From positions 186,001-250,000 of the forward strand of contig JALMLS010000064.1 in assembly GCA_038496445.1 (NCBI GenBank): a DNA stretch of 64,000 nt. Reading direction: 5' to 3'. Position numbers and translations under genes: made by a program. The notes below the pieces were generated by a model. The model worked only from the letters and a program-made list of their open reading frames with translations. It was not told where the DNA came from and did not search any database. Origin of the DNA: Trichosphaerium sp. ATCC 40318 (Eukaryota > Protista > Tubulinea). Below are positions 35,970 to 41,529 of the stretch, piece by piece (within the stretch, counting starts at the first letter, position 1; each line of letters begins with the position of its first letter).

Positions 35970-38900
35970 ATGGCGCGCACGAAGCAGACCGCTCGTAAAT
36001 CTACTGGTGGAAAGGCTCCACGAAAGCTTCTTGCTACAAAAGCGGCGCGAAAAAGCCCTAGAGTGCCTCTTGCTGCAAATGGTAAAAACAGTTACTTCGT
36101 TCGTTACATACACTAAATAATTGTACTAGGAGATGCCAAACGGTACGTTGGCTTGATTTAAACGAGTTTAAGGCGAAGTTGCTTATAACAGCTTTAGAAG
36201 CCCTCGTAGGGACAGAGCTCGATCTAGAGGTATTCGTGGAAGACCAAGAAAGCCTCTCGGCACAAATAATCAGTTCCAGGTAACTTCATTTGATTCAAAG
36301 GCCCAAAGCGCGAAAATATATGACAAGCATCTCAAAAATAGACTGCTGGCCATACAACTGACATTGGTTTAATCAATATTTAGTCTTCAAATGACCAAAG
36401 GGATACACTGTTCAGTGTGTTGATGCAGGCACTTGAAGCTAGGAGGAAGTATGAAGATGAAGTACAAAAGTACGTTTTTTTACCAACAGAAGTGTCAGCT
36501 ATTCATTGAAGCAATATTAATCATGTGTACAAAAGGGCACGGCAACGGATATGTTCTGAACGTGTTGTTTTGAAGACTACGGATCAATACAATGATTATT
36601 ATTCTGCTACTTCACCAGGACTCTATAAACGTATGAAAGAGAAACTCAGAACTATTAACAGTTTTTTGTTAAGTTGTTTGTCCGTCTAGATGAAATTGAC
36701 AAAGAGATTGAACACCTACAAAAGTTATTTATGAACGGATTCATCGTTGAAGATGAGTTCAGAGATCGTAGAAGAAATTTAGAGATACAAAGAGTGAACC
36801 CTTACAGCGAAGATATCGAGATGATTGACTATACATCTGTTAGATCTTCTGCTTCAGCTTCTAGGCAAGTACTAGTCTTGTGCCTCTAGTACTATTGTTA
36901 TAATCTAATCTCGATTTCTTTTACAGTGCATCTAGTCACGATGAAGAGAATAGGAATGTGCGTGTGTTTATTAGTTCAACATTTCGAGACATGCAGGATG
37001 AAAGAGAAGTACTTTTAAAACACGTGTTTCCTAAACTTCAACAAATGTGCAGTGATCGTGGTGTCTTCCTAACACAGGTGATTGTAAACCTGTACCTGTA
37101 ATTATTTACTCATACTTAGGTTGACTTACGTTGGGGTATAACTGCTGAACAATCTAAGAAAGGGAATACCATCGATATTTGTTTAAACGAGAGTAGGTTT
37201 AAACTTCTTGTTTTCGCGGACTTATGGTTCTTTTAGTTGATCGTTGTCGCCCTTATTTTGTTTGTATGCTTGGTGGAAGGTATGGTTGGAGTCAGAGCCA
37301 AGATAACTCAGACAAACTGCTTGCAAAAACGTTTGCTACTGCTAAAAAAACATTCCCTTGGATTGAGAAATACAAGGATCGTTCTGTAACTGAGTTGGAG
37401 CTCCGTCATGCTATACTAAACGGAGACCACCAAGACTCCATTAAAAGAGGTTTAGTATACATACGAAATGGAACATCGAAACTAGTATGTGACTGCTTGT
37501 CAACAATGCAATGTTAATCTCTTTCAGAGTGAGGAATCTATCGATAAGCAGAAAAAACTTGGAAACTTAAAAAAGGAGATAGGCTTATCCAATGTCAAAT
37601 CATACTGTTATAATAGTGCTTCGGAATTCGGTGATCATGTAGCAAAGAGTCTAGAAGCACTAATATGTGCTGATTTTCCAGAGCAGTTGCGTAATTTAAC
37701 TGTTTTCTGTGAACTAAACAACATATTCTTTAGGAAAAAGTTGACGCCTCTTGGAAAAGAAAGACAAGCTCATGATGCATTTAGAGCTTCTCGTGGAAGA
37801 CTATATATTGGTGGATCACATTACTTTCAATCTATAGAAGCACACTTCTCCAAAATATCGAATGCTCCGTTGTGTATTGTTGGTGAGAGTGGCTCAGGAA
37901 AGGTACTAATTTTTATCAAATTATTCCTTTAAAAAATGTTCATGTTTTATCTAGAGTTCTCTCGTTAGTAACTGGGCTTCACGCTACATTAACACAAATA
38001 TTTTTGTACTATACCACTTTATTGGTTGCACTGCGAATAGTACTGAACTTGGACGCATGTTATCACGTCTAATGGGCGAGATGAAAGAGCACTTTAAACT
38101 GACAAGGGCAATTCCAAGTGATTTGCGAGGACTGAAATCATCTTTTGCTGACTTTCTTGCTGATGTGGCTCATGCAGGGTACTTAAATTATTCTTGTCTA
38201 CAACATCACGTGTTGATTAAATATCAAATAGAGGTATGATCTTGGTTCTGGATGCATTGAATCAGTTAGAAAACGAAAACGAGGCACATTCGTTAGATTG
38301 GCTGCCAACAAAATTTCCAAAAGGCATTCAAGTACTCGTATCGACCTTACCCGGAAGGCACGTGACTCATAATTTTTCCTTCGCGGAAAAGAATCTTATG
38401 CATTTGTATAGATGCTTGGATGAAATATCCAGTCGCAAATGGACGAGGTTACGAGTTAATCCTTTAAATGCTCGCGAGAAACGAGAATTTGTTGATACTT
38501 TCATGTCTCAATTCGGCAAATCCTTAAGCGATAAACAACTTCAACGAATTGTCAACGCACCACAGTGTAAGAATGCATTGTATCTGAGGACTCTTCTTGA
38601 TGGTAAAAACAATCTAAACATTCATCTAAAGAACCTAAAAAATTGTTTGTAGAGATTCGCGTTTTTGGCACTTTTGAGGAGCTATCAGATAGAATTGATT
38701 ACTACCTACAAGCCAATGATCCACCTTCACTTTTCAGATGCGTTTTCGAGAGAATTGAACGTGATTACGACCGTGATCGTGTAAGTGAAGTTGTTTCTTT
38801 TTTTTCTAGCCAAGTGCTTTGAACACTAAACTTTCTTTAGCGTTTTTACTCAATAATGACTTTGATATCTGTGTCGAGACATGGACTTACAGAAGCTGAG

Positions 38901-41529
38901 TTACTTGATATTACACAAACACCGCATGCGATATGGTCACCTATGTATATTGCTCTAGAAGAATTACTTGTTAGCAGGTTGAGTGAAATACCTGTTTTTG
39001 TTGTGCTAACAAAGATTAAGGTCTGGATACTTGACGTTTTCTCATGACTATGTGAGACAAGCTGTGGCTTCAGTGAGGTACGTATTGTTTTAAATAACAT
39101 GTAAATATATTCGGTAGTGTATCACTAACATGAATAGCCATGCTGATGATGACAATCGTCAAATGATTGCAGACTACTTTACAGAAAAATGGTTGGCTGA
39201 TAAAAAAAATGAGTCCCTTTTAAAACGCATGTGTGAGGAAGTGACGTATCAATTGGAGGTAAAAAAATTAAGAAAACGCCACTGCAGTCATGGTAGTAGT
39301 AGAGTAACTTAACGTCGTTTTTAGAAACTTGGTGATAAAGACGAGCTACAAGACATATTAGTACAACCAAATGCATTTTTATATTTATGGAAAGAAGCAA
39401 AGTTTGACTTGTATCGATACTGGAAATTGGCTGTAGATGAGGACTTTGTTGATACTCTTGAAGAATGTTGCGAAGATGACCCAGATCAAAAAGAAACTAT
39501 TGAATATTTAGAGACAATGGGAAGGTTCTTTCAAGAGATCAATGGATACAAAGATGCTGAGACTGTTTTCAAGTACAATCAATTTTTACTTTTTTCTTTG
39601 AATTCATTCTCTTATTCTTTAGAATCCTATTAAAGCATTGCAATATCTTTTATGAAGATACAAGAGATATAATTCCGCTTGGAAGAGCTAATCACTATAT
39701 GGCATATCTATACCGAATGTGGGGAAAGTAAGTTCTAAACTCCTTGATTTTTTTTTGACTCCCTTTCTTTTTTTGCTCACTTCGTTCAGGTATGCAAAAG
39801 CTGAGCCATTGTATTTGGAAGCGAGGAGTATTTTTGAAGAGAATAAAGATTTGATACATGGCAGTCAACTTGCTACAACTATTAACGGTAAGACCATTCA
39901 CAACAAGTTTGTTGCCTTAATATTGTCTCATTTGTAACCTGTAGAGCTTGCTATATTGTACCGTTACAAAGGAGAGTATAAAAAAGCTGAACCTTTGTAC
40001 CTCAAAGCACTATCTATGAGAGTCGCTATATACGGCGAAAGTCATGAAGACATTGCTATATCGTACAACAGTAAGTTTCCATTTCAAAGTAGATTTTTTT
40101 TTTGGCTTTAATGTTAAAGATGTTTGTTGACGTGTAATAACGTTTTAATAGGTTTGGGATGTCTAAATCAAGATATGGGTAAGCTACAGAAAGCATCAGA
40201 ATACTTTGAGAATGCATTAAGACTAAGGGAACAACTTTTGGGTCCACAACATCCAGACGTTGCTATGTCTCTCAAGTACTATTACAAACTATTTTGTTTC
40301 TTTATCATTAACAGTTTTTTAGCAACCTTGCTAGTCTTAAAATAGCTCAGAGTGAATACTCTAGAGCTAGACCTCTTTACAATCGCGCTTTAGCGATTTA
40401 CAAATCCGTCTTTGGAGATAACCACTTGGGTGTTGCTACAACACTAAATTGTACGCTGTTTTGTTCTGGTGATGTGTACTGTTAATTTTAATATTCTTCG
40501 AAAGGCCTTGCTGGACTCGCATCAGAACAAGGTAAATACCAAGAAGCTGAAACTACATTCAAGATTGTACAAGATTTGAGTATAAAAATTCTTGGAGAAT
40601 CACACCCAACTGTAGCAACAGTGTTTAATGGTAACCTTTTGAAAACAAAAAAAAAAGCATCAAAGTTTTGAACTCTAAAGTTTTTCTACTTCCTTAGATT
40701 ATGCTGTGTGCTGTTTTGTTCAAGATAAGTATAAACAAGCTGAATCAGCTTATAAACGTGCTTTAAGAATAAGAAGAGAAACACTTGGTGAAGATCATCC
40801 TGACTATGCAGCTGTTCTTTCAAATCTTGGAAACTTGCACCAAACAACAGATGACTTGGAAACAGCCTTACAATACTACTACCAGTATGTCTTTCACAAA
40901 ATAATTTAACGACAAATTAATCACGTGATATTTGATGGGTTCTAAAACGCAAAGATTTTTGTGTTGGATGGGTGTCTGTGATTTTAAGTTCCTTTTTTTT
41001 TAGGGCTTTGGATATTTTGAAGAAAAAATTTGGTGATGTTCACTTGGATGTTGCTGGTGTTTATAAGAATATTGCAGCTAGTTTACAGCTTCAAGGAAAC
41101 TATAACTCTGCTCTTCCTTATTACAACAAAGCATTGGATATTCTTCGTGATGTTCACGGTGATAAACACGTGGATGTTGCTGTTGCTATTAATGACTTGG
41201 GTGTCTTGCATTTTAACCAACAAAATTACATTCAAGCAAAGCCCCTGTTCTTACAGGCGTTATCTATTTACGAATCTATATTTACATCATTCCAACCAGA
41301 AGTTGCTCAAGCGTTGCTTAATTGTGGAAACTTGCATAAAGCAATGGGACTAGACGAGCAAGCCAAGGTAAGAGCTATTTTTTTTTCTTGATTTTTTTTT
41401 TCTAAGTCGTTGTTGTAGGGTTATTACACGCGTTCTGTTGAAATGTATAACTTAATATTTGGTGTGGATTCTAATAATAAGAAATGTGTAGAGGCTAGGG
41501 AAAGTCTTAGGGATTGCGAAATGTATTAA
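35970..41529 (+). CDS. Histone-H3-tail + AT-hook + SHOCT-like + DUF4062 + NACHT/STAND ATPase + TPR protein (NPHP3/TEP1-like core)
   Basis: Exon 1 [32 protein letters not shown]. Splices in frame to [49 protein letters not shown]...VDLRWG...[11 protein letters not shown], Walker A GESGSGK|SS, Walker [11 protein letters not shown], then 42-aa kinesin-light-chain-type TPRs. Confidence 0.85.

Follow-up and report, generated by a model that had tools for sequence, protein, structure and literature searches.

The DNA examined here is a 64 kb window from Trichosphaerium sp. ATCC 40318 (contig JALMLS010000064.1, positions 186,001-250,000, forward strand), and all coordinates are those of the window. 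It is eukaryotic DNA, with a base composition of 35-41% GC and very short introns. At 35970-41529 on the plus strand, an open reading frame (ORF) that begins with a near-exact copy of the histone H3 tail lies upstream of a gene for a protein with a DUF4062 domain, a STAND-type P-loop NTPase and C-terminal TPRs. We hold it rather likely that the tail exon and this core gene are one gene. To the fuller reading, a single gene of ~26 exons at 35970-41529 that encodes an NLR-like STAND protein of 1320-1354 amino acids (aa) targeted to the nucleus or chromatin, we give an even chance. The domain order of such a protein is probably an H3(1-28) tail, an AT-hook, a helical or coiled segment of ~100 aa, a TeTIR/NIR domain, a P-loop STAND NTPase and ~12 TPRs.

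Coding potential was judged by a codon log-odds score trained on confirmed exons versus introns, in which true 27-codon chunks reach 14.8±5.8. Splice scores were judged by the leave-one-out range of 20 known sites, and all of the proposed sites fell within that range. The exons ahead of the DUF4062 exon are the following (nt, nucleotides):

35970-36081, plus strand: exon 1, predicted to open the coding sequence; Met, H3 residues 1-28 (35973-36056) and PRVPLAAN, with donor GTAAAA at 36082
36130-36142, plus strand: exon 2, a predicted 13-nt micro-exon encoding GDAK plus 2 nt; acceptor 5.4, donor 8.5, flanking introns of 48 and 55 nt
36198-36279, plus strand: exon 3, predicted, Arg-rich, with the AT-hook core RGRPRK at 36235-36252; acceptor 9.7, donor 8.8
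36384-36469, plus strand: exon 4, a predicted helical segment; acceptor 8.3, donor 11.3, codon log-odds ~30 over 28 codons
36536-36630, plus strand: exon 5, predicted, the weakest link; acceptor 1.4, donor 4.2
36690-36864, plus strand: exon 6, a helical segment with a Ser-rich linker; spliced at its 3' end to the DUF4062 exon, as RNA confirms (GC-AG intron 36865-36926)

In exon 1, 27 of the 28 H3 residues are identical, the sole change being Q19L, and the modification sites K4, K9, S10, K14, K18, K23, K27 and S28 are all kept. No ATG precedes that at 35970 in its ORF, and positions -3 and +4 are both G. Likeness to H3 ends exactly after S28 and gives way to the eight unrelated residues PRVPLAAN and then to the donor, which scores 8.8 (known donors, 5.6±3.5). 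Over its 37 codons the exon has a codon log-odds of 28.8. A tblastn search with full H3 across the window matched residues 1-28 only and found no histone fold, which rules out a whole-H3 pseudogene. Judged by its sequence, exon 1 is a tail-only copy, neither an H3 gene nor a whole pseudogene. The first-pass annotation of this locus had claimed a near-identical H3 1-28 at the N-terminus, with the same modification sites kept and no histone fold behind it, and it was right on all of these points; the tail is real and not a chance likeness. A perfect 8-nt inverted repeat, TGACACTT-GTCA-AAGTGTCA, lies at 35801-35820, ~150 nt upstream of the tail ATG; it may represent a promoter element or mark where the adjacent gene ends.

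The core gene was modelled at 36927-41529 with 20 exons and 19 GT-AG introns of 42-119 nt. The exon that opens the DUF4062 domain has no in-frame ATG ahead of the domain and so needs upstream coding exons. Pfam searches of the ORFs and exons reported DUF4062 and an NPHP3 domain on the first exons and a strong TPR_12 at the end. The modules of the core gene and its RNA-confirmed joints are:

36927-37685, plus strand: TeTIR/NIR (DUF4062) TIR-like NADase domain over four exons; Pfam DUF4062 and NPHP3 domain, phmmer match to 11gz_A
37734-39258, plus strand: STAND-type P-loop NTPase module; Walker A GESGSGK/S at 37882-37902 and 37955-37957, Walker B ILVLD at 38239-38253
39325-41529, plus strand: helical linker and about a dozen KLC-type TPRs (internal repeats by tblastn); stop codon at 41527-41529
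38977/39021, 39572/39623, 40070/40152, 40275/40323 and 41367/41419, plus strand: joints confirmed by spliced RNA contigs
~38178/38232, plus strand: a sixth joint, in an RNA contig with one extra letter there
36864/36927, plus strand: a seventh joint, seen as 36862/36925 with 2 ambiguous letters; GC-AG intron with donor GCAAGT

RNA evidence came from two public runs that hold parts of the stretch as low-depth contigs. These contigs are spliced and therefore derive from RNA; their coverage is patchy even within confirmed exons. Seven junctions were confirmed in all, and the contig across 36864/36927 spans 36752-36862 plus 80 nt beyond. Two in-frame, stop-free stretches of the model look like extra introns and have no RNA contig over them. 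One is 37686-37733 (48 nt, GT..AG, 29% GC, codon score -0.6) and the other 38358-38411 (54 nt, GC..AG, codon score 7.3). The protein length is given as a range because both may be introns.

The TPRs gave the strongest matches (TPR_12, E=9.6e-37 on the exon ORF 40936-41388; TPR_10, E=2.3e-19). In the gene model the NTPase module has Walker A and then Walker B, in the expected order. Its language-model neighbours score at most 0.87 and have NPHP3_N, NB-ARC or NACHT domains; the module, which is split over exons, gave no Pfam, PDB or PADLOC match to single-exon queries. Of the DUF4062, NACHT-like P-loop ATPase and TPRs that had been proposed for this protein, DUF4062, the P-loop and the TPRs are thus found, as is the general STAND plus TPR reading, and the NACHT assignment went unmatched in those single-exon searches. 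A tblastn search of the window found no second copy of the core protein and no paired NLR.

Papers from 2026 describe DUF4062 as a TIR-like NADase (TeTIR/NIR) that immediately precedes NACHT-type ATPases bearing WD40 or TPR repeats. According to these papers human TEP1's TeTIR domain is active and NPHP3 is without the catalytic Glu. Eukaryotic NIR domains occur mainly in NLR-like proteins and are present in 76% of Amoebozoa genomes. The residues needed for TEP1 activity are F902, S905, R914, R942, C959, R976 and E1008 (10.64898/2026.09.21.753143). In our window PF13271 scored 26.1 bits on the first exon alone (cut-off 24.7), the second part of the domain lying on the third exon, and phmmer against the TEP1 TeTIR crystal chain 11gz_A gave E=8.9e-7, 1.8e-3 and 1.3 for three exons. 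In the alignment of these three exons to 11gz_A, the equivalents of TEP1 F902, S905, R908, R914, R942-W-G, C959, R976 and E1008 are all identical. The RWG loop is at 37129-37137 and the predicted catalytic Glu at 37398-37400 (SVTELEL). Because all residues required in TEP1 are conserved, the "DUF4062" of this protein is predicted to be an active NAD+-cleaving effector, a point that the first-pass annotation missed. Within the NIR-STAND-TPR class the core protein is ordinary, and its gene is of a known kind. It is not an NPHP3 orthologue: PF25022 scored 29.2 (cut-off 33), TPR_NPHP3 38.2 (cut-off 100), and the catalytic Glu absent from NPHP3 is present here.

Between exon 1 and the DUF4062 exon we infer the chain of exons 2-6 listed above. 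The micro-exon is the sole route that brings exon 1 into frame with the AT-hook exon. Exon 3 scores 25.0 over 27 codons in the predicted frame versus 11.5 in the other open frame, and an alternative acceptor at 36191 would add 2 codons. The AT-hook that had been claimed at RGRPRK is present, with an R-G-R-P core and flanking Lys/Arg: GIRGRPRKP (36229-36255) is the sole [RK]GRP[RK] among the 127,996 six-frame codons of the window, and its core falls 55 codons past the tail in the required frame. Pfam AT_hook gave no report on exon 3. There is no ATG in the AT-hook frame, so this exon needs exon 1, and a start is reached only through exon 1 and the micro-exon. Exon 4 is in phase with exon 3 and ends in the strongest donor of the region (36470, 11.3); neither exon has a usable ATG except via exon 1.

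Exon 5 has a codon log-odds of -2.7 over its first 13 codons and 8.8 over its last 18. A shorter form, 36576-36630 spliced from a donor at 36462, is equally possible; the two acceptors score 1.4 and 0.7, and the three possible end phases of the exon score alike (157, 161 and 149). In exon 6 the only ATG is at 36731, with T at -3 and behind an out-of-frame ATG at 36690, and the 13 codons ahead of it look coding (log-odds 7.7). The SHOCT-like helix pair that had been placed at about 36690-36790 was not borne out: on 36659-36886 the SHOCT profile gave no match at E<=1, and the sole match was GvpG (E=0.044).

A dynamic-programming search over all GT/GC-AG chains returned, as its best path, exactly the exon chain of the first-pass annotation. 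This chain scores 160.6 versus 102±14 (maximum 143) in 300 dinucleotide-preserving shuffles (z ~4). With exon 6 included it reaches 199.5, and the best open chain without the micro-exon, which uses the alternative frame, is outscored at 120.8. The introns of the predicted chain (48-104 nt) resemble those of the downstream gene. Nor does the coding signal stem from a gene on the opposite strand: over 36090-36900, codon scores of the minus strand are below or close to zero.

Searched exhaustively with HMMER, the 37-aa tail exon gave 2586 matches. The best 150 comprise H3 proteins and H3 fragments, merged gene models of histone clusters, and a small number of uncharacterised proteins in which the H3 tail is repeated; none of these 150 shares the PRVPLAAN extension or has a STAND domain. 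Those in the last group, non-histone proteins with 2-4 H3-tail repeats and no histone fold, are from Allacma fusca (a springtail; CAG7786926.1), Ceratobasidium (a fungus; KAF8603043.1) and metagenomes. In a word-index search, whose length filter omits full-length relatives, the 48-aa ORF matched H3 fragments only and the 148-aa P-loop exon matched nothing. A metagenome locus scan with the P-loop exon likewise gave nothing. Neither the Trichosphaerium genome nor close kin of it appears to be in the collections searched. In the literature we found no description of an H3-tail/NLR fusion.

The case for a single gene is carried by the need of the DUF4062 exon for coding sequence upstream, by exons 3 and 4, which score like true coding chunks and reach a start codon only through exon 1, by the unique AT-hook in the required frame and by the best-scoring chain. 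Several observations weigh against it. The chain requires a 13-nt micro-exon, and the step from exon 4 to exon 6 is weak, given the first half of exon 5, its low-scoring acceptors and its equivalent end phases. Some in-frame chain was also found in 300 of 300 shuffles; an open frame alone carries no weight, and we dropped the existence of such a chain as evidence. The splicing in frame from 36081 to 36927 that had been proposed is seen in RNA at its last junction, 36864/36927, and is prediction for the remainder. The two public runs hold no RNA contig in 36144-36734, so the join from tail to sensor is without a transcript; coverage being patchy everywhere, we take this silence as neutral rather than negative. 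Deep contigs do lie over the tail exon (run X1, summed depth ~4700). They match its first 56 nt (35970-36026) at below 95% identity and diverge after codon 19 into ...APRK-NVASKAAKKS and ...APRK-SVASKARKSS, and come from other H3-like mRNAs, namely H3 variants, or other genes with such a tail, that are highly expressed in that sample. The HMMER, word-index and metagenome-locus searches retrieved no orthologue or paralogue; had the 5' end of an H3 gene been copied only recently, it would look equally conserved without selection.

The main rival to a single gene is a pair of genes. Exons 1-4 would then run on to the stop at 36507-36509 and encode a free H3-tail plus AT-hook protein of ~120 aa, which would mimic a histone tail, and the NADase-STAND-TPR gene would start at 36731 or 36423. 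The exon 4-exon 6 link, which depends on exon 5, was seen in no RNA contig; a TATAAA at 36623 lies ~108 nt ahead of the ATG at 36731, and spacers between genes in the window go down to ~250 nt. However, the donor at 36470 would stay unused, and read-through past the donors scores low, 3.8 over 12 codons for exon 4 and 1.1 over 30 for exon 3. The ATG at 36731 has the poor context and the coding-like preceding codons described above, and that at 36423 falls within exon 4, in which the coding signal begins, with a strong acceptor, at 36384. We regard two genes as possible but unlikely. A different doubt concerns the tail exon itself, which could be a relic: a fragment left from duplication of an H3 5' end, dead and untranscribed, that lies upstream of the STAND gene by chance. 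No transcript from the exact tail exon was found in the two runs, and its high identity could mean a recent copy. But the copy ends cleanly at residue 28 and keeps its ATG, open frame and strong donor, no further H3 sequence lies nearby, and coding-like, phase-compatible exons without another start codon follow. We consider a relic very improbable.

If tail and core are one gene, the question is what the tail does. Histone readers and writers dock on the H3 tail, and an AT-hook binds the DNA minor groove. In the mechanism we propose, the TPRs would sense a ligand, the NTPase would oligomerise, and the clustered TeTIR domains would hydrolyse NAD+ like TEP1 and the NIR systems of bacteria. The N-terminal extension would most likely place the protein in the nucleus or on chromatin, and the modifiable tail could also report on H3-acting enzymes. 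Residues 1-28 are the mapped nuclear-import signal of H3, in which K14 and K23 contact Kap123 (PMC5677370). TEP1 offers a parallel: there, a TROVE-vWA extension upstream of the TeTIR domain targets the protein to a ribonucleoprotein. Nuclear or chromatin targeting is suggested here because the tail is the exact H3 import signal and is followed by an AT-hook.

The tail might instead be an integrated decoy. An enzyme of a pathogen or giant virus would methylate, deacetylate or cleave the tail copy, and autoinhibition would be released, with oligomerisation and NAD+ depletion as the outcome. At its free N-terminus the copy keeps all major modifiable residues of H3 1-28, the protein has a predicted active NADase effector of the cell-death type, and Legionella effectors that write H3K14 are known. 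Yet the tail lies upstream of the effector domain and away from the sensor repeats, no paired NLR is encoded in the window, the literature gave no precedent, and the adjoining AT-hook and the exact 1-28 match to the import signal fit targeting better than bait. We rate the decoy as improbable, and the evidence suggests that nuclear or chromatin targeting accounts for the tail at least as well. If the decoy were true, no NLR of the guard or decoy type would have been known outside plants before it, nor any case of immune surveillance directed at the histone code.

Elsewhere in the window, a run of long ORFs at 7268-19754 (plus strand) ends in a HECT C-lobe (PF00632, E=3.5e-26) and has language-model neighbours named HECTD4-like; it is probably one giant HECT ubiquitin-ligase gene. 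A protein-kinase exon lies at 57241-58458 (minus strand) and a CobW/ZNG1-type GTPase exon at 60042-60443 (plus strand). Rfam and tRNA scans of the whole window were empty.

Should the join be confirmed, an N-terminal H3 tail with an AT-hook would be new on a known kind of NIR-STAND-TPR protein. If the tail exon is in the mRNA, no histone-tail copy known to us on a non-histone protein would be longer or more exact, and a literature search found none like it; the copy would sit on an immune-type STAND protein with a predicted active TIR-like NADase. The protein would then be an NLR-like death effector brought to chromatin via histone import or reader machinery, or a receptor that monitors H3 writers, erasers or clippers. 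The latter reading bears on Legionella-type and giant-virus effectors in natural amoebal hosts.

With HMGA-type AT-hooks the predicted N-terminus shares the R-G-R-P core with basic flanks (GIRGRPRKP), but here a single hook sits in an Arg-rich linker and is passed over by Pfam. Compared with the N-terminal nuclear localisation signal of H3 (residues 1-28; Kap123/importin-4), the copy is an exact match, K14 and K23 included; it differs in being carried by a predicted non-histone cargo. Short histone mimics (influenza NS1 ARSK, the automethylation motifs of G9a/SETDB1, NOP16, SARS-CoV-2 ORF8 ARKS) likewise present H3-tail sequence on a non-histone protein. Those are motifs of 4-8 residues, mostly internal or C-terminal, whereas here a near-exact 1-28 stands at the free N-terminus. 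Plant NLRs with integrated decoys (RRS1-WRKY, RGA5/Pik-HMA) combine, as the predicted protein would, a STAND receptor with a copy of a host segment that pathogens target. In plants, however, the decoy is usually in the sensor part, and the effector is a CC or TIR domain; here the effector is a TeTIR domain, the copied segment, a disordered tail of 28 aa, would stand at the very N-terminus and thus upstream of the effector, and the window holds no paired helper NLR.

The nearest known group is that of the TeTIR/NIR-NACHT-repeat proteins (TEP1, NWD1/2, TTC41, NPHP3 and the bacterial Avs2, Swarozyc and Evangelion effectors). TTC41 and NPHP3 have the same order as the protein described here, DUF4062/TeTIR, then a P-loop STAND NTPase, then C-terminal TPRs; NPHP3 is without the catalytic Glu, which is kept here. 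With TEP1 the protein shares the RWG loop and all residues required for NADase activity. In most members of the family the TeTIR domain is N-terminal, whereas here at least 58 aa (RNA), and probably 188 aa with an H3 tail and an AT-hook, stand ahead of it. Of the members described in the 2026 papers, only TEP1 has a long N-terminal extension, the TROVE-vWA region.

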